A DNA stretch of 64,000 nt from Entomortierella parvispora E1425 (lineage: Eukaryota; Fungi; Mortierellomycota): NCBI GenBank assembly GCA_020891255.1, contig BQFW01000010.1, positions 682,001 through 746,000 of the forward strand. The letters are read 5' to 3'. The translations under genes and the position numbers were made by a program. A model generated the notes under the pieces. It worked only from the letters and a program-made list of their open reading frames with translations, had not been told where the DNA came from and ran no database searches. Positions 34,484-50,126 of this stretch are shown here, in pieces (the stretch's first letter is position 1; each line of letters starts with the position of its first letter).

Positions 34484-37400
34484 TTACATAAGCGGAGGTT
34501 GGCTCTGCTGCTGTTGTGGACGCTGTTGCTGCAGAATTTGCAGCTCTGCATCAATGGCTCTTGAGATAAAGTCTCTTCTGGACGAAAGATCCGTGCCCAA
34601 GATGCCCTCCAGCTGCGTCCTGATTTTTTTCTTGGTCACTGTCATCAAGTCCACGCCCGTCAATAACCTCCTGATATGCGCTTGTATATCAGCGTCGGTA
34701 ACTGCCGAATCAGACCCTGCAAGTCCCGATTGGATGACTGGCAGAGGACTAGATGAAGGCGTGAAAATCATAGGGCCTATGACGGGCGATGAAGTTGCCG
34801 CCGACGACTGCTGCAGGAACTGCTGTTGTTGAATCAACTGTTGCTCGAGCTGTGGGTTGTACTGCTGCTGAGGCAGTTGTGAGGGATTCAAAAGAGGGGT
34901 TCCGAGCGTCATGCCCAAGCCCATCGTTGCCTGACTGAACTGATTCAACTCAATCATGCCCGGCTGATGGGATGCGGACGACATCATGGAGCCTCTCTGC
35001 TGCACCCTGTTCTGGGGATCCATAAAAGGTCCTCCTCCGTAGCTCACAAACGGCGATTCATTGCCTCCGCTAGCAGGTGGGAGAGGCGATGTTGACCGGG
35101 GGCGACCTCCGGCAGATCCTGGAAGGAAATTTGTCGGTATTTGGGAAGGTACACGAGAGTGACTAGGATTATTGAGCTGGATTGCGTTCGAGTCTCGGTA
35201 GTAGTCGTGCAACACCTCCTCGCCAAATCCTCCTCCGCCTCCATAGCCAGAGTAGACACTCTTGTTATTATCGCCTCCAATGACACTTCCGCCATCATAG
35301 TGATGAGGTAAAGGTGAGGGTGTTCCCGATCGACCATAGAGCGAATCCAACTTTGTGTACTGGTTTGACTGGTAGGCTCCTCCTCCTGCAATCATTCCAG
35401 CATGGTCGTAGCGTCCCATCACTGATCCAGTTTCATCTTGATAATTCGATCCAACCACTGAGCCGTTACCATCCATGTAGTAACCACCACCAGTGACACT
35501 ACCATTGTTCATCATCATAAGTCTCTCCGCTTCATAGGCTTCCAGGCTCTTGAGGGGGATAGAGTTGGGGTCAAATCGAGTCTGAGCCTCAGCCGCCATA
35601 ACCATCTTTTTACCATCGGCGCCGACGACCTGTCTAGTGTTTCCCCAAGAGAAATCATCGAAATGCCAGAACGAGTAGAGCGGAATGAAGACGGAGAAGA
35701 AAGGCATCGCAATGATGTAGATGATCATCCATCCAATATGTTGCCAAGCTCCCTTGAGAATGAAAATCAACGCCTGCAATCCATAAACGGCCGCCAAGAT
35801 GGCTACGGCGACAATCGGAAGTGGTTGCACATGGGTAGCGACGACAATGATCAAGTAAACCAGGTACACGAAAGAAGCCGGCAAGATCAACGTTCCCAAG
35901 AGATCAATAAGAACAATAAATCGCATCGAGAAACAACAAAATCCGCAAAGCTCTGACAGGACCATGAGCTCCCCCAAGTTGTGAATTGTAGAGTTGATCC
36001 ATCGGCGACGTTGAGACAACAGAACTCTCCATCGGTCGGGGGCAACGGTCTTGCAGGTGGCATCGGGAGTGAACTTGAGCTTGAAGTTCGGGAAGTATTT
36101 CATCATCAGCGTAGTCAAGTAACGATCCTCTCCCAAGTGCAGTAAATTCTTCTTGTGCAGCGTGTCCACATCGTTATGACTGTAGTCGTGCACGATCTTG
36201 TTGGAGATGATCAATGGCTTGCCGGCGACAGTCAAGATTCGGTACATTGAGAAACATCCGGGCAGACAGGTCACGGACCCAAATAGCGATTCGAAAGACT
36301 TTGCAAGATGATGCGAGATATAGTATTCGTAGACCTGAATCATGGTTGTGAATGATCGGTCCTCGTTGGCCACTTGAGTCTCTCCGCACAGCCCAATCAC
36401 CTTGGAATCTGCTACCATGCAAGCGACTAGTCGGTTCAAAGAATCAGGCATAACCTCAGTATCGGCATCCACTTGAAGGATGTACTATTTTCCAAGCAAA
36501 AAAGGTGTTAATAACAAAACTAGCCTGTTGTGGGTTTATAAAAGCAAAGGTTACACGTGGCTGTACCTCATAGAGATTGGGGTGGACACCGATGATATGC
36601 TTCATATGATGGTACATTTCCAGCTCCAGCGGACACATCTTCTTGCCAGTGTGGATACTGTTCAAGAAGTTCATAAGAATCAACTGTGAATCGCGCTTTC
36701 CTCGGTTTCCTGGCTTTGCAGTCTCGTTGGGCATGCCAACCTTGGCCACGACCAAATAAGGGACCATATGGCCCTCAAACTCGTATAATCCCGAGTAAAC
36801 CTTGCATTGGTTCAGCTGCTGTCCTCCAATTCCCAATGCCTTGTAGGCCACAGGCTCGACATCAACTCCTTCGGTAGGTTGCCATCCAAGCACATCTAGG
36901 ACAATCTTGGGTGTCGGGTAGTCATTTCCTGATCCAACAATCATTCCGTCGGCAATGACCATTAGAAGCTTTCGCTTGTCGTCGTATTGCAGTGCTGCTA
37001 GGGAGTTCAATGTCTTTCGAAGTGATTCCTCGCCTTCCGTGTAACAGGGCACCTGACAGATTACAAACTTGTCGTAGTCAATTGGCTCGCGCTTTGACGT
37101 CAACTGCAGGGCAGCCAAGAACTTAATCAAGATGACACCACCCATCAGAGCTGAGGCAGCAACTAGGACCCAGTTGCCAAACTGACACTTCACCGAGTTT
37201 CGCTCGTCCAAAACGCCTACATAGAAGGCTCGATTGAGGCAAGTCAGGGTATCCGACTGGACCTGCTTCGACAGTTGTTTGAACTGTTTCGTAATGTCTG
37301 TGCCATAGTTGTTTGTGAAGAGGTCAACAACGTTTTTGTCCAAGAAGGCCGTAAATGAGGGGTCCGGAATGAAGCCGGGTGGAGGGTTGGTGTTGACGAC

Positions 37401-40400
37401 ATACGTTGTCAGATCGTAAATTTTCCCATCGATCTGGGCCCACATGTTGCTTCCAGATTGATTTTGGAAGACATCCACTTCGATCGCGACGATACCCTTC
37501 TTCATCGTATTGAGTTTCGGAAGGATTGTGTCTGCATAATAGGTGGAATCGCTGTACCATGGCAGATTCTTGTCAGTGTTACGAGGCGAAGGACCATGCG
37601 TAGGCATGTACATCTGCTGGTATGGAGCCTCGGGGATCATCAGAACAGGTGTCGTCACCAGGGCAGGGCACGCCCACCTCAGATCCACAGGGAACTGAGA
37701 GGTGAGATCCTGTCCTGCAGTATACGCCATGTACGAAGGAGAAGAGGGGTAGGTACCAGAGTTGGATCCCGAGTGATCGGTCTTTGCGAATTTAGTGATG
37801 TCGTAGACGTTTCCATAGACCGAGACCCAGAAATCTGTCGGGTCTTGATGATAGGACACCTCCGTGGGATTATACATCAGGTCAAAATCCGGGCACATTA
37901 CTTTGGGCAGTCCAATGATGAAAAAGATCACCATCGCAGACAGCCAAAAGACAATGAGGCAGAGCGTGACCTTTTCACGCCATGCCATTTGAACATCAGG
38001 TCGTTTCATCCGTCCACAGAAGCTAAGGAACACGGATGGAATCCAGAAAGTGTTCATCCAAACAAAAGCAACCCAGGCTCGGCGGGTTTTCGTCTTTGCT
38101 TTTGGAGGCTGAACGGATTCATCAGCCTTTGTCCTGTTCAATGCTAGAGTAGGCTTTCGCTTTAGGTCCCCATCTGTCCTGTCGTAGCCTCTGAACATCA
38201 TTTGACTGCTATTAAACAGAATTGAACGTGTAAGCAAAGTATGAACAAAGAATATATGCAATTTCATAACCATTTGATCCTTATGACGTCTGATCGTTAA
38301 ATCACACTGCGTTACCTCTCATTGTCCAAGCCAGGTGTGTCAATGGTCTTGTTGTCGGACACAGGCGAGTCAGAATCACGACCGTAGGCTTGATACCCAG
38401 GATTGTACGTAGGGTTGTATCCTACAAAGCCGGATTCAGCTGTGTTGGGGTAAGCATGCGAAGCCCGGGAAGCGTCTGACTTGTCCGACGCATCAGATTC
38501 TGCTCGAGGTCGGTATGCGGTCAAGAGCTGTGTGCTCACGTTGGAATCATCACCGGTCATTGGTGCTTTGTATGCCATGGACTCGTTGACTGGGGGTGTC
38601 ACAAAGCTGCTGAACTGACGCTGCTCCTCCGGATCTGCCTCAAAACCAACCGAGCCCCCCTCAGTTTTCTCAATTGAAATGCACTCATCCTCCAGTATAC
38701 TCCACGCCGAGAAAGATATCCAGACGTAGCTGTGCCCGATCGAACCATCCTTTGGCATGTTCCAATGCAATAGAGTTGCCAAAGCTTTGCACTGCTCTGC
38801 ATCTGGAGCGGTTTTGTCATAAGACAGACCGCGCCGTTCGAAGAGTACCTTGTATCGTTGTAAGAAAGAGGCATGGTCGAATGATACGCAGTAGTCGGCC
38901 TTGACTTTGGACTGGACAAGGGTACTCAGCCTGAAGGATTCGATCTGGGACCGAACAAAGACAGGGTCACACTCAATCAATCCCTCAGACATGCGATTGT
39001 TGGGTCGAATATGCACCACTTGATAAAGTTGAGTCCCATCGAGCGAAGTGCAAATGTCCCGCAAAGTTGAGTGAAGCTGCTTGATCACTGTCGAAACTGC
39101 ATTGTTGGATCGTCCCTTCCTTCGAGCTTGAACCTGGGTCAGCTTGCTCTTTCTAACACTAGGCTGCCGAAGAGGCATGGTAGAAAGCTGGGCCTTGACG
39201 ATTGTCTCCTTGGAACGTGGGTGACTCTCCATGACCAATGATGGATTGGATTCCAGCATCTGAAGCATAAAAGGATTGTGCGAGGTCTGGAAGAGCGAGA
39301 TGAAATCTGGCGAAAGCATGTCCTGGTTCCTGATAAAGAAGCTGGCCAGGTTGTATTGCACATCGCCTCCATAATGTTTGATTCCAAAAGAAGATGCATA
39401 GGCTGATCCACTGATGTAGGAGCTGTTGGACTGGAAGGCGCGGTTCATTCCAGGCAACATTGAGCTGGATTCGGCATCACTGGACTCTTTACTGGCCTTG
39501 AGTGTCGCTTCGTGCAGGAACTTCACCAAGCCGCGAGGTGAAGCATCGGTAAGAGTATCCATTCCACATAAGAGGTCCATGCTGGCTTGACTGCGCTCGT
39601 CAAGTTTTGGCTCTGTGACCAGAAGACCATCACCGGACATGGCCTGTGGGTCTTCGACAAAGGTTTTTTGCTGCAAGAACCCTTGGAGTGCCTCATTGCA
39701 AAAGTTGGTGCAAAAGTTTTCAAATCCTGTGGGTGAGTGAGTATCAAATCCAGGCATATCCAATATACCGATAAAGGAAACCTGATCCTCCTGTCTTCTG
39801 CACATTTGTTTGTTCATGGCCTCAACCAAGAACGTGAAGACAAGACTGTACAGTCCTCGAGCTAGACTGTCACATTGTTTCTTAGCAGCCTCAGAGTCCA
39901 GAATCACTGTGCACATGTCACCAGCAATCATCTTGCGCTTGTAAGAGAGTGCTTGCTGCAAAGCATCTATTTCGGTCCACAAATGCCACTGGTTAAATAA
40001 ATGCAACATATGCTCCTTTTTTGATGACCCATCACGCTGTTCGTACCTTCTTCGACTCCTAATAAATCTGCGACATGTTCAAAGATGTGTCGCTGTCGCG
40101 GAACAGTTGCCATGACGGTGGGATCCAAAGTCGAGTCCACAAAGTCGATCCTGCCCAAGTGAAGTATCGCAGCCAAGAGTTGCCATATTTGAGAAATCGC
40201 TTTTGGTTTGAATCCCATGGCGGCAAAGGCAGGTGTCAAATTGCCGGTGGCATTTGCTTGGTCCTTGTGAGGGTGATAAGGAAGATAGCGGAACTCGGAG
40301 ATATTATTGCCTAGTCGAAGTCGCTTTCGGTCCTCGCCAGATGCATCCCGGAACATTGCATAAAACACTTGGTAGGACCCAAGGTGGCTAGGCGCATCCG

Positions 40401-41251
40401 TGACAAGGTCCTGACTAAGCATGAAGGGCAAGAGCTTGGCTCCAAAGAGTCGGCCCTTGGCCTTGTATTGTAGCTCGAGGTAGAGAGAATGCCGGGAAGC
40501 ATTTGGTCCGTGCTCAGACAAGCAATTGCCAAAGGCCTCCAGGATATCGCGCGAAGCTCTGATCTGGGCTGCGATCTTTGATTCTTGGTTGGCCTTTGTA
40601 CCGAGACGGATCAGCTGTTGGACAAGATGCCGCTGCGAGGTGGTTTTTCCTGAACCGGCAACACCGCTTTTTCAGAAAGGGGAACAAGGGGGAGAAGATG
40701 GAAAGAGATGGACAGGGGCAGGGGTTAATTTCAGCGAGGAGTGCTGGAGCCTTGCACAGTAGAGAAGCTATCTGCGGGAATTCGATCAGGATGACCGCTG
40801 CAGAAAGAAAAAGGCTGAAACGATTGAAACGAAACAAATAACTGGCGCCTTACCTTAAAACTACACCCTGATCCAGCTCTGTTCGCTTCATATGAAAGTG
40901 CATGGTGGTGGCAAGCTCGAAGATATGGGGTTCCAACGACGACGTGGCTGCTGCTGTTGCCCCAGGCCTCTGTGATGATGGCGTCTGTGCCTGTTGCTGC
41001 TGTTGTTGTTGTGTGAGCGCGAGATCGACATAGAGCTGGCCGTTGGCCTCCGTGTAGATATTCAAGGCGTGGTTAGGATTGACGGCGATCAAGGTCGAGG
41101 TACCCACGCGGGTGTAAGGGAGGCCGAGATGGTGTCGACGTGTCAGGGCCGAGAAGAGGGCGTCTTGGCTCAAGGACTCGCTGTCCTGGACACTCTCGGA
41201 CGAAGAGGACCCTTCCCTGGCCAGTGCGAGTAGATCTTGTGGAGGCAACAT
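34484..41251 (-). CDS. Myosin-motor-domain chitin synthase (class V/VII, CsmA-like), multi-exon
   Basis: Myosin head: PYTRVG..LIAVNP, P-loop [23 protein letters not shown]. Cyt-b5-like region. Chitin synthase core: [49 protein letters not shown]-terminal DEK_C-like [16 protein letters not shown]. Confidence 0.95.
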
Positions 41252-41916
41252 GTTGAGAGCTGATCAGGTGGACAATGCGACAAGGCGGCAGAAGGAGAGG
41301 CGGAAGGAAATGCAATCCAATAAGCAAGAGAGATGGGATCGGTGATGCAAAGAATGGAGGAATGTGAAGGACAAAGGGTGCCACCAAGAGATTCAGTGTC
41401 TGGTACAGTCTCCAGCGCTGGTGGATATGGGAAGAACAAGGAGAAGGCTCGACTCGAAGAGCGACAGGACTGAGGACGGAGGAGGGTGCTGCAGTCAGGC
41501 GCTGGCAATCGAGACCAGAGACGGAGGGAGGGACAGAGAGGGAGAGAGGGAGGGAGGGAGGAACAGACGAGGAGAGAAGAGGAAGAGAAGGAGTGAAAGA
41601 AACAGAAACAGGACCATGGCCATTATTGCCATGCTTCCACCCCAGAGGTAAACAACAACAACAATAAGATGCAGGCAAAGCAATAATAACATGGCCAACA
41701 ATAATGTTATAAAAATAGGGCGTCATGTTCGGTGTCACTCGACATCCTTCTTTGTCGTCGCTCTGTCCACCCACTCCGCACCAGAAATAGAACTTCTTCT
41801 TCGGTGCGATTTATTGTGTTTTTCCTTCGCGCCCTCCCTTGAAGGGCCAGGCCTTGTATGTACTCCCTGCCCTCGTACAGCATACGGTACCGTACATCAT
41901 GGCCCGCATCCCATCT

Positions 41917-43338
41917 TCACTCTCTGCCAGCGACGCCAACAATCCGCTCGGCCTCCGCCCTCATCTGAGCTGCTGCCTCCTCAACACTTATCCGCCCCAT
42001 CATCGCATCCTGGATCATTGGAAACAGTCCGTCTTCCAGCTCTGGGTAGACCTTCAAATGTGGAAACATGGCCATATCCGACTCGACTGTTGCACACAAG
42101 CACTTCAATCGCTCCGCGTCCAATTGCCTCCAAGCAGCTTCACCCTCGACCTCTTTAGCTTGGACCGGCGTGGTTGTGTCCAACAACCTCTGAAGCACCG
42201 CCTTTTTAGTTGGGAAACTGCCGGAACTTGAAGCTTCTAACCATTGCTGGTCGTCTCGGATCAAGAACTTCAGAAGCATCAATGCAGCCTCAGGATGGCG
42301 ACAGCTCTTGGGGATCGCAAAAGAATGCATACCCGAGTATGCAGATCGCTTGCTGTTCCTGCCACATGGGTATCGCATCACACCGATCTTTGGCGGGCCT
42401 GTCTTGGAAGACGAAGAGGAAAGAAGCTTTCGTTTCATCTCACCATAGTACGATGGCCAGTCTGCCACCATGCCACATTTGCCCTCTGCAAACAGATTCG
42501 AAACCTCGTCAAAGTAAAAGGATTCGATTCCTTCTGGCACGGCACTTGTTTCCACGAGCCCTTTCAAGTACTCGAGAACTCGAATGACAACTCCTTCGTC
42601 AAAGATTGGACGATCGTCTTCACCAAATAAAGCCTCCCCTGATTCCATTTCCATCATGGCCAGCTCGTAAAAAGTTCCAAAGAGCCCCGAAAGTTTTCCT
42701 GGAAATACGTATCCCTCAAGTATTTCCTGGGTAACCCCGGTACCAGCGTCAGGTGGGACCAATATGGAGGCCTTTCGAATATGACTCGCTGCCACCGCCA
42801 AGTCCTGCCATGTCTCTGGGGCTTTTAGTCCAAGAGTTTCAAAGACATCGATCCGATAGAATAGCACTCTAGTGTCGACCATCCGAGGTAGTTGGAGTAG
42901 ACGGCCATGCACTTTGGAGGCCTCCAGTGCTGAAGGTAAAAACGTGTCTTGGTCTTCAACAGAAATTTGATCCGATCCCAACTCTTGGAGAAAATGCGCC
43001 TGGGACGGCGCGTATTTGATGTGAGTCGAACACAGATCAAGATCAGGAACCGCCGTTTGAGAACCTTTATCATAGTCTTTAAAAGTCTTTGACAGGTAAT
43101 CATTTAGAGCCGGGTGTGGGCCTTGAAAGATGATCTCGACCTTGTGACCAGTCTCTTGCTCAAAGAAAGGGAGTCTCTCGTAGAGCCGATCGTACTGCGG
43201 TCCGCCTAAAGCATAAGCGCGACAGTTAATCAGTAGGCGGAATGTGGCAGCATTCACTCTTGTCTCATGCACATGCTTACCAACTACTGCAATCTTGAGT
43301 GTACATGGTGCACTAGATGGTGGCATTACAGTCGACAT
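41917..43338 (-). CDS. Bacterial-type sugar ABC transporter substrate-binding protein (solute-binding family 1-like), with predicted intron 43280-43206
   Basis: FEQETGHKVEI, PDLDL, FLPSALEASKVHGRLLQLPRMVDTRVLFYRIDVFETLGLKAPETWQDL, FAEGKCGMVADWPSY, FAIPKSCRHPEAALMLLKFL, AMMGRISVEEAAAQM are typical SBP family 1 motifs. GTAAGC...TTTAG (75 nt, in frame) splices to LKIAVVGGPQYDRLYE. Confidence 0.88.
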   Translation of the reverse strand: MSTVMPPSSAPCTLKIAVVGKHVHETRVNAATFRLLINCRAYALGGPQYDRLYERLPFFEQETGHKVEIIFQGPHPALNDYLSKTFKDYDKGSQTAVPDLDLCSTHIKYAPSQAHFLQELGSDQISVEDQDTFLPSALEASKVHGRLLQLPRMVDTRVLFYRIDVFETLGLKAPETWQDLAVAASHIRKASILVPPDAGTGVTQEILEGYVFPGKLSGLFGTFYELAMMEMESGEALFGEDDRPIFDEGVVIRVLEYLKGLVETSAVPEGIESFYFDEVSNLFAEGKCGMVADWPSYYGEMKRKLLSSSSSKTGPPKIGVMRYPCGRNSKRSAYSGMHSFAIPKSCRHPEAALMLLKFLIRDDQQWLEASSSGSFPTKKAVLQRLLDTTTPVQAKEVEGEAAWRQLDAERLKCLCATVESDMAMFPHLKVYPELEDGLFPMIQDAMMGRISVEEAAAQMRAEAERIVGVAGRE

Positions 43339-44561
43339 GACTTTTTGGTGTCTCTGCATCGGAGGAAGACGATCATGCCCATGGCAGGCTAACATCCCCT
43401 GAATGCCACAATCCGCATTGGTGCCCCTTAATGGATACAGAGCTTTAGGCTCTTTTGCTGGCCAGAGAAAGCAGTGAGTGTCTGTACAATGGCGAAGGCT
43501 TTATATGCTGTGAGGGCCATTGGGCTTGACCTATGGTAAGATGAATCGGCACAATACGTAAATGCGGGCATTTGGCACCCCGGTAAGTGGTTCCGGCACA
43601 AGAAAGACTCATAGAACGTAGGGGTTTCGTCTCCAACCCTCCATTGCGTCGAGAATTGGTGTGAACAATGTTGTTTTTGCAGGTCCGCCTTGCCAATCCT
43701 TTCTCGCCGTGCGGGGTGCAATGGTTTGACTGCTGGAGTCAACCCTATTCGCCCGCTGCCTCAGACACTCTGATGTCCAGTCGACATGTAGCGTATGTAG
43801 CATGCAAGCGCCTCCTCTCCCCCTGGACTACCGGGGAGAGCCCGAAAGATCTCCCAGGTGTCTCTCTCTCCTCCCTGCATGCAGCATCGCCACAATCGCA
43901 CTGCAGCATCAAATGTCTTGGTTGCACACGACCAGACAAGGAAGCATCCAGGAACCACCCTGCAGTGGTAAGAGAAAGAAAATGCGAGTGAAAGAAACGG
44001 CGGTCTCCATTGATGAAGGTTATTACACTGGAACATTGCAGTGTACTTTGTCGGTCAGCGGCATATCCGAAGAGGGTATGAGGCTGTCCGTTTTTCCCTG
44101 CCTTCTCTTATTCTTAATCGTCCAGGCGCATCCGCGACGACGTCTGTCGCTGTCAGGGGATAGGCGAGGGAGGGAGAGATGGACAGATGGAGGAGAGAGC
44201 GAACACACGCGCCTTTGCTCTCTTGCAGACCAACCAGCGGACAGACGGACAGATGTCCGAAGGTTTTTTAGCTTGTGTTCCCTTTCCTATTGTTCTTCCT
44301 TTTCTTCCATTCTTCTCTTTCCTTTGTTTTCCTCTTCTCTTCTTCTTTCCTGTCTTCCCTCTTCTCTCCTCCTCCCTCTCATCCCCCTCTTCCTCGCTTG
44401 CTTGGTTGGTCTCTGTACCCTCAGGACTGAAACCTGCATTCCTGATCTCATCTCCTTTGCATTTGCAAAAGAGAATCGTTCATCTCTCAGCTCCTTTCCT
44501 TGTCCCACACTGAACGGACTGCAGATCGGCTGGCTCCCTCTCTCTCTCGCTCTCTCCTGTC

Positions 44562-47500
44562 ATGGCCTTCCCATCCTTTCTCAGGTAGCGGATCAGATCT
44601 CTGGATCTAGTGGCCACACAATAACCTCACACTGACTTACCACCTTCTCCCCTCTGACAGCACCGCAGAAGATGTCCTTCCTGCCCTCTACTCTTTGGCC
44701 TCGGCGTTGATCATTATGTACCTGGCCAGAAAGCCAGTGCAGCTGAAAGAAACCAGCTCTTTAATTGACAACTATGCCGATGATCAAGGCGAAATTGACC
44801 AGCATTTTGAAGGCGAGCCTGTTGCCGAAAGCTCGGTGGCAATAGAGCAAGTGCAAGCCCAATATCAGGCACAGCGCTCAAACAGCATGTCTATCAACCT
44901 TGCCCGCTTCGGACTGACTGCTGCTCAACTTGCGCTCGCTCTCTTCCTCGTTGTCATTTCACGCGCTGACTCCAATGGCACCGAGACAGATGAAGATTCG
45001 AGTTTGAACCCACACACAGCGGTTGAGAAGGCAGTCCAGATTGCTGGATGGTCGTATGCGCTGATCCTCTCCCTTGTTCACATTACCAGACCCCGGGTTG
45101 CTTTCAATTTTAGTCTGCGACCTATGATGGATTTGTTTTACGTTCTCGAGTTTAGCCTCATGTCCTTGCGCCTCTATGAGAATGAGTTGGTCTATCTGCC
45201 CTCTAACTTCTGGCCCTTGTGGCTCGAGTTGGATATGCTTGCCTGGGCTGACTGTGCTTTGTTGCTCTGGGTCTCTTTGGTGACTCGTCCTTATCAGATT
45301 CCGACTCCCGTGAAAAAGCCAAAGGGGGATGAGGTCTGCCGTCTTCCTTCTCCCGAGTATTCATCGTCCCTTTACTCCCAATTGACCTTTTCATGGGTCA
45401 ATCCTTTGGTGTACTTGGGCTACCGACGACCTTTGCAAGACATCGATCTTGCTGACATTGAGCAGCACGATTACTCTGTTGTCTCTATCCGTCGCTACAA
45501 CCTTGTCAAGTAAGTCTTGTGCCCTAGCGCAACTTCGAATTTTTTTTTTGTTCGTTGGGTGGTTGGGCGGTTTATTGGTTTGTTGTCGCCTTTGTCTCTT
45601 GGGCGCGTGATGGACATACGTCTCTGTGTTCAGCTGTTGAGGTTTGTCTGGGCACAGGCGATCGGCGATCGGATGCTGGACGTGGCGATTCCTGGGAAAA
45701 GATCGTGTTCACCAGTGGTGGCACAAGTGCTCTTTGCGATAATCGCTCACATAATCCAAATGGCCGGAGGATCCTTTCTTAATTTGGTCCTGATGCGGAA
45801 ATCGAGCCGCGAAGGTTAACGTGCTAACAATCCGCACTATGCTGTCTCCTTTAGGCAAAGTTCGCTCTTCTGGTCTTTGATGAAGGTCCTCAAGTGGGAA
45901 TTCTTTGCACAGTTTCTGTGGGCTCTTCCTTGGTGCATCCTCATCAACGTCTCGCCCTACTGCTTGAATAAGATCATCCAGTATGTTGAGTGTGAACAGT
46001 GTGGCCCACCCACCATCGTGCAATACCTGTACGTCTTTGGTCTTTTGGTTTCCTCCTTGCTCGAGTCTCTCTGCAACCAGAATGCCCTCCACATCGGTCG
46101 CCGCATCTTTGTCCATACTTTCTCCATCCTCAATGTCGAGATCTTTGAAAAGGCCCTGAGGCGCAAGGACATGGCCTCGCCAGCCGACAAGTCTGAGGAG
46201 GAAAAGGCCAACGACAAGAAGAAGGATGGAACTCTCAATATTGCCAGTGAGTAGACAATTGCTACCTTAACGCTCACAGATGGCGCCATTGATCCTATTC
46301 GGTCACTAACTATAACGTGACATTTCCGTTTCTCTCACTTTCTCTTTGTAGACTTGATTGCTGTTGATGTCAAGAAGCTGGAAATCCCCTTCAGCTACGT
46401 TTTCTATCTGTATGGGTTTCCTATCCAGTTCATCCTGGCTGGTGTTCAGCTGTACTGGCTCCTTGGTAACGCCTCTTTGATTGGAATTGTCTGTATGTTT
46501 GTCACGTACCCAATTCCAGCCAAACTGTATGCCATGATCATGAAACTCTTCAAAGACATTATGAGCACCAAAGATGATCGCATGGATGCCCTTAACGAGA
46601 TGCTTTCTGCCATCCGTATCGTAAAGTTCTTTGGATGGGAATCAAAGTTTGAGGAAAAGATCACAGCCGCCCGTGAGAAGGAACTGCAGCGTACCAAGGA
46701 GTCGTATGTCAAGATGATCTTTACCGATGTCGTTTGGATGATCGTTCCTCTCCTAAATGTGGTCATTATCCTGACAGTCTATACCAAGGTCTTTGGAAAC
46801 GAAATCTCGGCCTCAAAGATGTTCACTACCCTAGCGCTGTTCAATATCATGCGTCAATCCCTCAACACACTTCCCTGGCAAATCAAGAACACGATGCAGG
46901 CTGCAGTCAGTTTGAAGCGTATGAATAAGTTCCTGTTGGAGGAGGACCTCGTTAGAGACACCACCGTGACCATGATGGGGTCCAAGACCAGCATCACTGT
47001 CTCATCCACACCTACCATCGGCTTTGTTAATGCGTCCTATATATGGCCCAACAAGGAGCACAACAAGGGTGAAACCCCCACCAAATCACCAACAAAGCTG
47101 TCCTGGGCTGAAAAGGTGAAAGCCAAGTTCACAAAGGCACCTACCATTGTAATTGAGGAGCCAGTGGCAGAGGTCGTGGCCCCCCAGGAACGCTTCAAGC
47201 TCAAGAACCTCTCTATCGACTTCCCAGTAGGAAAACTCTCTGTCATCGTTGGACCTACTGGATCAGGAAAATCCGCCCTGCTGTTGGCTCTTCTAGGAGA
47301 ACTGGAACGTTTGGAGGGAAACATGTATTTGCCTCGTTTGGACTATGGCAGATCAACCCACAGTGAGCAGGGCTCGGGACTTGCTTATGTTGCTCAGACC
47401 GCCTGGCTGCAGAATACAACCATTCGCAACAACATTCTCTTCGGACGCGAGTTCGACCAAGAACGATATGATGCTGTTGTCGAGGGATGTGCTCTTGTTA

Positions 47501-50126
47501 CCGATTTTGAAATTCTGGAATCTGGCGATATGACAGAGGTCGGCGAGCAGGGTATCACTCTGTCCGGTGGCCAGAAGCAGCGTCTTTCTCTTGCTCGTGC
47601 TATCTACTCCAATGCCCGAGTGTTGTTGTTGGATGACTGTCTCTCTGCTGTCGACACCCATACTGGCAAACATTTGTTCCAGACCCTGACAGGACCATTG
47701 ATAGAAGGCAGAACCGTCTTGATGGTGACTCACCAAGTTCAGTTGACCATGAAGGCTGCCAGTTTAGTTGTTGTGTTGAACAAGGGTGAAATTCTCGGTC
47801 AAGGAACCCCTGAGGAAGTAGTCCGCAACGACTGGGTGGATTATGTCAGTTTGGTCGATGCTGTTGATGGCGACTCAAGCGAGGTCAGCACCCTACACAA
47901 TGAGGACAATGAGGAGGAGAGCGGCCCCGAACCCAAGAAGGATAGGAAGGAAAAGGTCAGCGTTAAATTGACAGAAGACGAGAAGAAAGCCGAAGGTGCC
48001 GTCAAGTGGCATGTATACAAGACCTACCTCATTGCGTCTGGTGGATGGCCTTTCTGGATTGGGCTTGTCATCTTGTTTTTGACTCGTGAGGTCGTTGACG
48101 TTGCCCAAAATGCCTGGTTGGCTGTTTGGGCCAACAAAATGGCATTGGCCACTGGCTCTGTCGCCATCAAGTCATTCGATTACCTCATGCCCGCACCCGT
48201 TGCCCAGTCTTTGTACTCTTCTTTCACCCCTTCTGGAAACCATACTTTTGGTACCATGACCATGCATGTATTTGGCAAGGGCGAGCCCGAAACAGTTGAT
48301 GTCGACTTTTATCTTGGAATCTACATCTTGCTCAGCATCTCGACTCTTGTCTTTGCCGCTTTAACAAACTACTATACTATCTTTGGAGGACTCGCCGCCT
48401 CTCGATCTCTCCATCAACAGTTGTTGCGCAAGGTATCGCGTGCTAAAGTCCGCTTCTTCGACACTACACCTATCGGTGAGTACAAAGTTCTCTTTTCTTA
48501 TTTCTCATTTAGATTGTCCTCAAGGCATGAATGGAGCAACCCTCGCTGACAACTTTATCTCTCCTCTATAATATAGGCCGAATTGTCAACCGTTTCAGTT
48601 CTGATATCTCGACCATTGATGATGATGTCAGCAACGGACTTCAGGGAATGTTTGGGTCCTTCGTCACTGTCCTGGGTATTGTTGTGATCATCTCGGCCAA
48701 TATGCCAATGTTCATGATCCCCGCTGTATTTATCGTCGCAATCTATGGAGCCATCGGAGCTCTCTACGTTCCTGTTTCCCGCGACCTGAAGCGATTGAAT
48801 TCCAACTCGCGCTCCCCGATTTTGAATCACTTCAATGAGGCCCTCAATGGTCTCGCTACGATCCGTGCGTATGGATTTGAGCGACGATTCCTTTACAAGA
48901 ACCTCACGAACCAGGACAACAACAACCGGACCTTCTTTTTGCTTTGGTCCACCAATCGCTGGTTGCATTGGCGCGTCGATATTGCTGGAGCTTTGGTTGC
49001 CTTCGTTACTGGTATCTTGATTCTCCAAAACTATGGCCGGATCGAGCCTGGTTGGGCAGCGCTCAGCTTGACCTATTCTCTCATGTTTACAGGCACGATC
49101 GTATGGTTGATTCGCATCTATGCTCAGAACGAGATGAATCTGAACTCTGTCGAGCGAGTTGCCGAATACATGAATCTGGAGGAAGAGCCTGCCGCCATCA
49201 TTGAAGGCTCTCGTCCTCCTGCATCCTGGCCCTATGCAGGAGAGATTGTCGTAAAGAATTTGACAATGAAGTACGCCCCAGACGCCCCCTCGGTTATCAA
49301 GAATGTATCGTTCAAGATCAAGGCCGGAGAAAAGGTTGGAGTTGTAGGTCGCACAGGATCTGGAAAGTCAACTTTTGCAATCAGTTTGTTCCGCTTCATG
49401 GACCCCGTTGGTGGAACTATCACTATTGACGGCATCGATATTTGCAAAATTGGACTTCAGGACCTTCGATCCAACTTGACTATCATCCCTCAAGATCCCA
49501 TTTTGTTCAAGGGTTCACTTCGTTCCAACTTGGATCCTTTTGGAGAGCGGGAGGACAGGGAGCTCTGGGAAGCTCTTCGCCGGAGTCACCTGATCCCTGA
49601 CGCAAGATACTCCTCCAGGTTATCGACTCGCCGCAACAGTCTCGAACTCACCTCCGCCGCCCCCTCGTCTAACGATGCTGTCGAAGTGGAGGAGACTCTG
49701 GATCCTGCAAAGATCACTCTTGATACCCCCGTCAAAGAGAACGGCTCCAATTTCTCGCAGGGTCAGCGCCAATTGATTGCATTGGCCCGTGCTCTCGTCC
49801 GGCAATCCAAGATCATTGTCATGGATGAAGCAACAGCCAGTGTTGACTTTGAGACTGACCTCAAAATCCAGGGCACGATCCGGGAAGAGATGTCTAACTC
49901 AACCATCCTGACCATTGCACATCGTATCCGCACGATTGCGGATTTTGATCGTGTTCTTGTGATGAATGCCGGTGAGGTGGCCGAGTTCGACACCCCTTTG
50001 ACATTGATGCGGAGAGAAGACAGCTTGTTCCGTTCCATGTGTGAACGGTCCTCTGAGTTCGATGCTCTTTTAGCCATTGCGGAGGAAAAGGAGCGACGCG
50101 ATGCCGAACAACGGTTACAAAAATAA
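44562..50126 (+). CDS. ABCC/MRP-type full-length ABC transporter (Ycf1/Bpt1/Ybt1-like), multi-exon
   Basis: Exon 1 44562-44584 (MAFPSFL) splices to 44661. SSLYSQLTFSWVNPLV; NBD1 GPTGSGKS / LSGGQKQR / LLLDD; FFDTTPIG|RIVNRFSSD; NBD2 GRTGSGKS / FSQGQRQL / IIVMDEAT. Confidence 0.95.

Follow-up and report, generated by a model that had tools for sequence, protein, structure and literature searches.

EMPS_07446, a gene of the fungus Entomortierella parvispora E1425 that encodes an SBP_bac_1 protein of 448 amino acids (P0001), is the product of a real and old transfer from a bacterium to a fungus and has become fixed across the Mortierellaceae. It occupies positions 41917-43338 on the minus strand of the window analysed here (64,000 nt of contig BQFW01000010.1 of assembly GCA_020891255.1, positions 682,001 to 746,000). 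The bacterial origin of the gene, its integration, splicing, expression and constraint, and the inheritance of its leaderless state follow from the observations below. The explanation that we favour, to which we give a probability of about 0.7 as a whole, is that the gene for a leaderless, cytoplasmic solute-binding protein (SBP) of the SBP_bac_1 family, with the CUT1 fold, passed once from a soil bacterium to the ancestor of the Mortierellaceae and inserted just upstream of a myosin-motor chitin synthase gene. The nearest known relatives of the donor lie in a clade containing a Ktedonobacteraceae genome (Chloroflexota). After insertion the gene gained a fungal promoter, one phase-1 intron, the base composition of its host and a few surface-loop expansions, and was retained as a single gene under strong purifying selection. 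The protein would remain cytosolic and use the cleft between its lobes as in bacteria, binding and possibly converting a small carbohydrate, with no role as an ABC-importer receptor; both the leaderless state and the cytoplasmic role would have been inherited, neither being made by the fungus.

The open reading frame (ORF) listing holds a frame of 492 amino acids on the minus strand (41917..43395), in which the annotated start is the ATG at 43338 and an alternative ATG lies at 43395. The gene is laid out as follows.

Minimal 5' untranslated region (UTR): 43339..43347, minus strand; the transcript contig ends at 43347, running into Illumina adapter.
Coding sequence (CDS) exon 1: 43281..43338, minus strand; 19 codons plus the first base of a Gly codon, with the ATG at 43338.
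Spliceosomal intron: 43206..43280, minus strand; 75 nt, GTAAGC...TTTAG, phase 1 inside the Gly codon, in frame and stop-free.
CDS exon 2: 41917..43205, minus strand; 428 codons plus the stop (41917-41919), holding the whole two-lobe SBP_bac_1 fold.
3' UTR: 41753..41916, minus strand; at least 164 nt, covered by the transcript contig of run X2.

The intron starts 58 nt into the coding sequence, and the 448 residues of P0001 are made up of 19 codons, one split codon and 428 codons. Exon 2 (41920-43203, minus strand) was used for the sequence searches, and was 100% identical to P0001 in the protein database; P0001 itself was used for the fold and for the exhaustive search. The protein scores 72 bits with the Pfam family SBP_bac_1 (PF01547; cut-off 26), aligning to positions 15-306 of the 307 in the profile, and 63 bits with SBP_bac_8 (cut-off 27). 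The NCBIfam model for the thiamine pyridinylase BcmE gives a weak match (22 bits against a cut-off of 175). A first-pass annotation, made from the sequence alone, had described a family-1-like SBP between fungal genes; the Pfam assignment and the fungal flanks agree with this description. The GC and GC3 contents of the gene match those of its neighbours (GC3 of 0.53 versus 0.55-0.58 in neighbouring genes).

Logan contigs of four sequencing runs were placed on 40300-45300. Run X2 shares its sample with X1, the probable source run, and one of its contigs, of 1543 nt, consists of 41753-43204 joined to 43280-43347, with Illumina adapter at its end. The join, from 43204/5 to 43280/1, omits exactly 75 nt (CT..AC on the plus strand, which is GT..AG on the gene strand), and these are the letters of the in-frame intron that had been predicted at 43280-43206. 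Three canonical introns are skipped by contigs of X2, with dinucleotides that suit the strand: one of 187 nt belongs to the chitin synthase gene, one of 76 nt to the ABC gene and one of 75 nt to this gene. The depth of X2 is close to zero in the intergenic stretch 43473-44140. The genome announcement describes a TruSeq RNA library from the endobacterium-cured line of strain E1425 that was sequenced (PMC8759367). Together, the spliced contig and the published RNA library mean that the gene is transcribed and is spliced as predicted. The contig end at 43347 lies downstream of the alternative ATG at 43395; as contigs cannot define ends, this is weak evidence for a true 5' end at 43347. A contig of run X3 (a different sample and study, ∼95% identity) is collinear with the window over 40300-45300 in a single piece of 19.4 kb; it spans the gene and both fungal flanks, so that the linkage is independent of the source assembly. 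The junction and the linkage to both flanking genes had been put forward as checks, and a transcript contig and a second-sample contig, respectively, cover them.

These data bear on the possibility, to which we give a negligible chance, that the gene comes from an associated bacterium (Mycoavidus or a soil bacterium) as a contaminant or through a chimeric assembly. E. parvispora E1425 does naturally host a Burkholderiaceae-related endobacterium (PMC8759367), but the sequenced line had been cured of it and the nearest bacterial sequences are from Chloroflexota, not Burkholderiaceae. Moreover, the gene sits on a 1.8-Mb contig of the E. parvispora assembly, has a spliced intron and a fungal exon 1, is joined to both flanks in the second-sample contig and keeps its gene order in the other genera read (see below). 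We therefore ruled this origin out on the cured strain, the intron, the synteny and the Chloroflexota affinity.

After the fungal sequences, the best matches are prokaryote-style proteins of 375-420 amino acids with 32-48% identity, the only named one of which is from a Ktedonobacteraceae metagenome-assembled genome (MAG). When one genome for each GTDB species was scanned with a pattern, at least 429 bacterial species proved to carry a relative; they belong mainly to the Chloroflexota, Acidobacteriota and Armatimonadota, with some from the Gemmatimonadota and the Paenibacillaceae. We built trees from 136 rows (LG+G4) and from 52 rows (LG+C20+F+G4 PMSF), and their topologies agree. The Mortierellaceae sequences are monophyletic in both (SH-aLRT 100); their sister group (SH-aLRT 95, with the next node also at 95) consists of P0037-P0043 and the protein of the Ktedonobacteraceae genome (L008), to which the fungal protein is 45-48% identical. 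The fungi and this sister group are nested within a radiation of Chloroflexota, Acidobacteriota, Armatimonadota and Gemmatimonadota. Because a claim of transfer rests on absence elsewhere, an exhaustive phmmer search was run against 1.84 billion representatives. Only the main Mortierellaceae cluster and that of Actinomortierella score above the bacterial level; below them come the bacterial sister clade, at 47% identity, and then matches at 43% and lower. No other eukaryote-like cluster was found among the 1.84 billion representatives, the named members of the next ten clusters are all bacterial and the nearest Atlas clusters are 100% Bacteria. When the L-fuconate dehydratase of L008 was compared with a set of 5.8 billion proteins, bacterial proteins at 76% identity or more made up all of the matches listed (120).

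The placement of the fungal clade inside a bacterial radiation (SH-aLRT 100 and 95) is the outcome of the phylogenetic check against bacteria and fungi that had been proposed and, together with the lack of another eukaryote-like cluster in the exhaustive search and with the intron and synteny shared among the fungi, it upholds the old horizontal transfer from bacteria that the first-pass annotation had inferred. The fungal stem is long (0.6-0.9 substitutions per site), and the intron and composition are host-like, as would be expected if the gene were an ancient eukaryotic one that was inherited vertically and lost nearly everywhere else, or if it had moved from the fungus to bacteria. Against this, the fungi lie several starred nodes deep within a bacterial diversity of at least five phyla and 429 species, and the exhaustive search yielded no other eukaryote-like cluster. 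Vertical inheritance and reverse transfer were rejected on the nested phylogeny and this search, and we regard them as highly improbable.

Within the fungi, a word-indexed search found orthologues with 55-86% identity in Mortierella, Linnemannia, Podila, Dissophora, Gamsiella, Lobosporangium, Haplosporangium and Entomortierella, and longer copies of 617-633 amino acids in Actinomortierella. Five other fungal loci from four genera were read: those of Linnemannia elongata (L005), Gamsiella multidivaricata (L006) and Actinomortierella wolfii (L007), and L088 and L089, which are two copies of a metagenomic Entomortierella-like contig. In all five the gene stands directly upstream of the myosin-motor chitin synthase gene on the same strand, as it does in the window, which answers the proposed synteny check; the gene on the side opposite the chitin synthase varies among genera. 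The intron, of 70-120 nt, is at an identical phase-1 position in the four genera compared (that of the window included), at the Gly/Ser codon before GPQYD. Exon 1 is also present in L088, L005, L006 and L007 and is homologous to the bacterial N-terminus (..TL[KR][IV]A[VL][VI]G); the intron therefore entered the coding sequence after its import and before the diversification of the family. The claim that the intron had been gained is thus sustained, by an exon 1 with bacterial homology and a position common to four genera. The ratio of nonsynonymous to synonymous substitution rates (dN/dS) between the window and L088 is 0.094, at a dS of 0.72. The conserved adjacency to the chitin synthase may be no more than a trace of the one site at which the gene was inserted in the ancestor.

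Two observations concern individual orthologues. In the L. elongata locus (L005:11460-11648) model P0021 of the annotation has a further, second intron and a tail of 25 amino acids; this 3' exon looks like an annotation artefact, because the genomic frame of L005 has an in-frame stop directly after ..ALQPF, where the other orthologues end. In the Actinomortierella orthologues (A. wolfii, L007:10001-11974, and P0036) the surface loops have grown into long acidic or low-complexity inserts and the core motifs are kept.

P0001 begins with 12 polar residues and then enters the first β-strand, with no hydrophobic stretch and no lipobox, in agreement with what the first-pass annotation had seen. That annotation took this to be the loss of a signal peptide in the fungus, a view contradicted by the bacterial relatives, which start M-x(2-6)-L-R-V-A-L-I-G-G-P-Q-Y-D and go straight into the first strand. 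The tblastn and upstream-stop analysis found an in-frame stop no more than 12 codons upstream of the alignment start in 35 of the 80 bacterial loci, which leaves no room for a leader there; the longer extensions that are possible in other loci are mostly non-hydrophobic. Similarly, the full-length phmmer matches align from subject residue 2-6 down to an E-value of ∼1e-45, and the canonical leader-bearing SBPs, which align from residue 30-115, begin at ∼1e-40. A distant outgroup, P0076, has a classic lipoprotein leader with a lipobox. Since the closest relatives and the whole bacterial clade have no leader, the leaderless state is ancestral to the transfer. The fungal protein is almost certainly intracellular.

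The AlphaFold2 (AF2) model of P0001 has a pLDDT of 92.4 and a pTM of 0.91. Foldseek matches it to the CUT1 binding proteins with PDB codes 6dtq, 6j9w, 7yzs, 1eu8 and 5ysf with a probability of 1.00 (TMt of 0.68-0.85 and TMq of 0.64-0.75); the solved matches are Thermotoga maritima MalE3, the Thermus α-glycoside-binding protein, the trehalose/maltose-binding protein of Thermococcus litoralis (TMBP), SmoF and a sophorooligosaccharide-binding protein, at 17-23% identity. In a profile alignment to MalE3 (E-value 1e-49) the invariant motifs of the leaderless clade take the place of the loops from which canonical members build the sugar cleft, and from this alignment we infer that the conserved residues line the cleft between the lobes. 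The motifs GGPQYD, D-L-[IVL]-S-T-H-x-K-Y-A-P-S-Q, PR-x-VD, SGLFGTF[YF]E, ADWP and HSFAIP are all present in P0001. Bacteria conserve 65 columns at 94% or more, and 60 of these are kept in at least 18 of the 20 fungi; most of the remaining changes are conservative, such as R353K, which all fungi share. The strictly conserved polar residues are D25, H50, N54, D76, S79, T80, H81, K83, Y84, Q88, R127, D130, E200, D252, D268, W269, R306, Y309, H313, R385 and E410. So many invariant His, Lys, Arg, Asp, Glu and Tyr residues would fit a polar or anionic ligand, or catalysis. Fungus-specific surface loops are found at 66-72, 169-182, 206-208, 284-288 (SSSKT) and 367-378 of P0001 and coincide with dips in pLDDT. 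The low-complexity loop insertions noted in the first-pass annotation are thus real, but they are modest: SSSSSKTGPP is a five-residue lengthening of a loop that bacteria also have.

The neighbours of 72 bacterial loci were clustered and annotated with Pfam and NCBIfam, with the following result.

SDR dehydrogenase: 37 of 72 loci; one example passes the cut-off for D-mannonate oxidoreductase.
MR_MLE dehydratase: 20 of 72 loci, immediately upstream in 12.
Ribose-type importer: Peripla_BP_4 in 22, ABC_tran in 19 and BPD_transp_2 in 17 of 72 loci.
NAD epimerase/dehydratase-like protein: 14 of 72 loci, immediately downstream in 10.
GFO/IDH/MocA oxidoreductase: 13 of 72 loci.
Alginate-lyase-like protein: 12 of 72 loci.
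SGL lactonase: 11 of 72 loci.
FAH-family hydrolase: 10 of 72 loci; resembles 2,4-didehydro-3-deoxy-L-rhamnonate hydrolase.
Sulfatase: 9 of 72 loci.
Altronate/galactarate dehydratase: 6 of 72 loci.
α-L-Fucosidase: 5 of 72 loci.
BPD_transp_1 pairs: 4-5 of 72 loci.

Seventeen MR_MLE genes are 63-74% identical to that of L008, which is of the L-fuconate-dehydratase type and the nearest database relatives of which are named L-fuconate dehydratase. In the sister clade of the fungi the SBP gene follows the L-fuconate dehydratase gene by 15-20 nt (20 nt in L008), and the genes that flank it in another bacterial clade encode an Amidohydro_2 lactonase, a fucosidase and an MR_MLE protein. We take this neighbour set to be one of genes for the non-phosphorylative oxidation of L-fucose-type sugars and related sugar acids. 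The ribose-type importer has a binding protein of its own and thus has no need of the leaderless SBP. BPD_transp_1 is the permease type that partners SBP_bac_1 proteins, and in L068 the BPD_transp_1 pair follows a separate, second SBP. The members of the bacterial clade would thus take part in sugar-acid catabolism in the cytoplasm and would not serve as transport receptors; their context points to L-fucose or sugar-acid catabolism rather than to maltose, trehalose or chitobiose. As the bacterial genes are leaderless and uncoupled from permeases, a cytoplasmic, transporter-independent role predates the transfer; the proposal that the fungus had repurposed the protein does not hold, since its bacterial relatives had no leader and no coupling to SBP_bac_1-type permeases beforehand.

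Example loci among the 80 bacterial ones (L008-L087) are L008:4111-6623, L063:6593-15160 and L085:2872-14734. Some of the loci contain two members of the SBP cluster each, as in L045 (3147-4310 and 9809-11101) and L068 (679-2304 and 7821-9176). The second SBP of L068 is the longer and is followed by the BPD_transp_1 permease pair, so that a canonical importer lies beside a leaderless paralogue.

The same operons raise the question of catalysis. The protein might be an SBP-fold enzyme, for example a mutarotase, an epimerase or the catalyst of a lactone-handling step in a non-phosphorylative pathway for L-fucose or another 6-deoxy sugar, in which case the fungus would have imported a catalytic activity. 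The polar residues are unusually strictly conserved across five phyla and the fungi, the gene comes directly after that for L-fuconate dehydratase (a 20-nt gap in L008) and the operons already own a different transporter with its own binding protein; SBP-fold enzymes exist, thiaminase I and THI5/NMT1 among them, and there is the weak match to the NCBIfam BcmE model. On the other hand, no catalytic motif was recognised, the closest solved relatives are all pure binders and lactonases (SGL and Amidohydro_2) co-occur in some of the loci, so that the protein is no simple replacement for them. We take catalysis seriously but consider it unlikely. A more specific version, in which the leaderless clade would be a new cytoplasmic SBP-fold enzyme or metabolite-handling partner of L-fuconate dehydratase in the catabolism of 6-deoxy sugars or sugar acids, unrecognised in bacteria, and would have been imported by the Mortierellaceae for L-fucose-type sugars, seems to us distinctly doubtful; if it were true, the fixed site upstream of the chitin synthase gene could reflect a role related to the cell wall. 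A functional link of the gene to the wall is speculative.

In our preferred reading the protein would be cytosolic, and its conserved cleft would bind, or convert, the same class of small carbohydrate as in bacteria. Our best guess for the ligand, taken from the gene context in bacteria, is an L-fucose-type 6-deoxy-hexose or a sugar-acid metabolite. Fucose is a wall sugar of the Mucoromycota and the GDP-L-fucose pathway of M. alpina has been characterised (PMC8092308), so a fucose-type ligand is plausible in the fungus.

Several points count against the preferred reading or parts of it. The fucose or sugar-acid ligand is assigned solely from neighbouring genes in bacteria, and that context is heterogeneous, as it also includes alginate-lyase-like proteins, sulfatases, a GT4 glycosyltransferase and a mannonate-oxidoreductase-like SDR. 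Sugar-acid metabolic neighbours of the bacterial kind are absent around the fungal gene, and the 64-kb window contains no homologue of the L-fuconate dehydratase (FucD). Support values in the trees are SH-aLRT only, and many of the relatives are unlabelled metagenome proteins, which leaves room for a rare eukaryotic homologue. Finally, run X2 carries no RNA label; its RNA nature was deduced from the three intron skips and the near-zero intergenic depth.

The genes that flank EMPS_07446 bear on whether it could still act in uptake.

Myosin-motor chitin synthase: 34484..41251, minus strand; Pfam Myosin_head, Cyt-b5, Chitin_synth_2 and DEK_C; immediately downstream of the SBP gene, on the same strand.
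Full-length ABC exporter: 44695-50126, plus strand; ABC_membrane and ABC_tran, twice; 1.3 kb upstream of the SBP gene.

The complete two-lobe SBP fold is retained, and the ABC transporter gene 1.3 kb upstream in E. parvispora could suggest that the protein is still an uptake receptor in the fungus, exported by an unconventional route or acting at the membrane, and passing sugar to a fungal transporter, for example this neighbouring ABC protein. However, no fungal or bacterial member has a signal peptide, the adjoining gene encodes a eukaryotic full-length exporter (ABC_membrane and ABC_tran, twice) and not a BPD_transp_1 importer, and this neighbour is not conserved in Linnemannia, Gamsiella or Actinomortierella. 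A tblastn search of the entire 64-kb window found no BPD_transp_1 or BPD_transp_2 permease, in keeping with the statement of the first-pass annotation that no cognate permease is present there. The fungal gene thus has neither the export signal nor the permease linkage of a transport receptor, and we consider such a role very unlikely.

Periplasmic-binding-protein folds that work inside cells without a transporter are exemplified by the THI5/NMT1 HMP-P synthase and by thiaminase I. The concept of a cytoplasmic SBP-fold enzyme or binder is shared with these proteins; they belong to unrelated subfamilies, and the sole link to them is the weak BcmE match. The CUT1 SBPs MalE3 (PDB code 6dtq), TMBP (1eu8), the Thermus α-glycoside-binding protein (6j9w) and Agrobacterium SmoF (7nbz) share the Pfam family and the two-lobe fold, but are exported and encoded beside BPD_transp_1 permeases, whereas the members of the leaderless clade have no leader and are found in catabolic operons; the usual cleft loops are replaced in the clade by its own invariant motifs GGPQYD, STHxKYAPSQ, PRMVD and SGLFGTF[YF]E. 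The fungal protein belongs to this clade by its position in the tree, its 45-48% identity to the sister group, its 60 of 65 conserved residues and its leaderless N-terminus. The bacterial members include those of the Ktedonobacteraceae MAG (L008), Pyrinomonas methylaliphatogenes K22 (L060), Paenibacillus mangrovi (L067), a Cohnella sp. and MAGs of Acidobacteriota and Chloroflexota. The fungal copies differ from them in having an intron, expanded surface loops and a eukaryotic neighbourhood, and in having lost the operon partners (FucD, SDR and others). Database labels for the clade are 'extracellular solute-binding protein' and 'multiple sugar transport system substrate-binding protein', which are probably misannotations.

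Other bacterial genes have been integrated, expressed and conserved in fungi in the same type of event, and involve different protein families: Mortierella alpina has a bacterial-like NRPS (10.1101/2020.08.21.262279), the Mortierellaceae have ice-nucleating proteins of bacterial ancestry (PMC12978214) and the Neocallimastigomycota have SBP_bac_3 genes (Ciach et al. 2024; PMC11291939). The main text and the examined supplements of Ciach et al. contain no mention of SBP_bac_1 or PF01547. The literature searched contained no paper that deals with this gene, with the leaderless SBP clade or with an SBP that partners fuconate dehydratase. With its shared insertion site, shared intron, expression and purifying selection, EMPS_07446 is a clean and well-supported case in which a whole fungal family has had a bacterial gene fixed at its root; it can serve for dating and for studies of how transferred genes acquire introns and surface loops. 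It also replaces an account in which a signal peptide was stripped off in the fungus with one in which the protein comes from a sizeable, unstudied bacterial clade of cytoplasmic SBP-fold proteins. Knowledge of the role of this clade beside L-fuconate dehydratase would fill a gap in the sugar-acid catabolism of soil bacteria and would explain why the Mortierellaceae have retained the gene.

The contigs of the sequencing runs also inform on the surroundings of the gene. Those of X2 confirm two introns in the flanking genes: one of 187 nt at 40667-40853 (minus strand) in the myosin-motor chitin synthase, and a GT..AG intron of 76 nt at 44582-44657 (plus strand), near the 5' end of the gene for the ABC exporter. 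Relative to the window, X3 has short intergenic stretches at 43479-43590 and 40749-40782 swapped for unrelated letters (30-40 nt replaced by 63-190 nt) and a 21-nt deletion at 41745, which indicates strain- or species-level turnover of insertions and deletions in the promoter and 3' flank of the gene. The two long ORFs that flank the gene, at 43802-44635 (plus strand, 277 amino acids) and 41073-41774 (minus strand, 233 amino acids), are rich in Ser, Leu and Pro and lie in intergenic or UTR stretches with a strong strand skew (an AT skew of -0.34 at 44000-44500); they are probably non-coding simple sequence.

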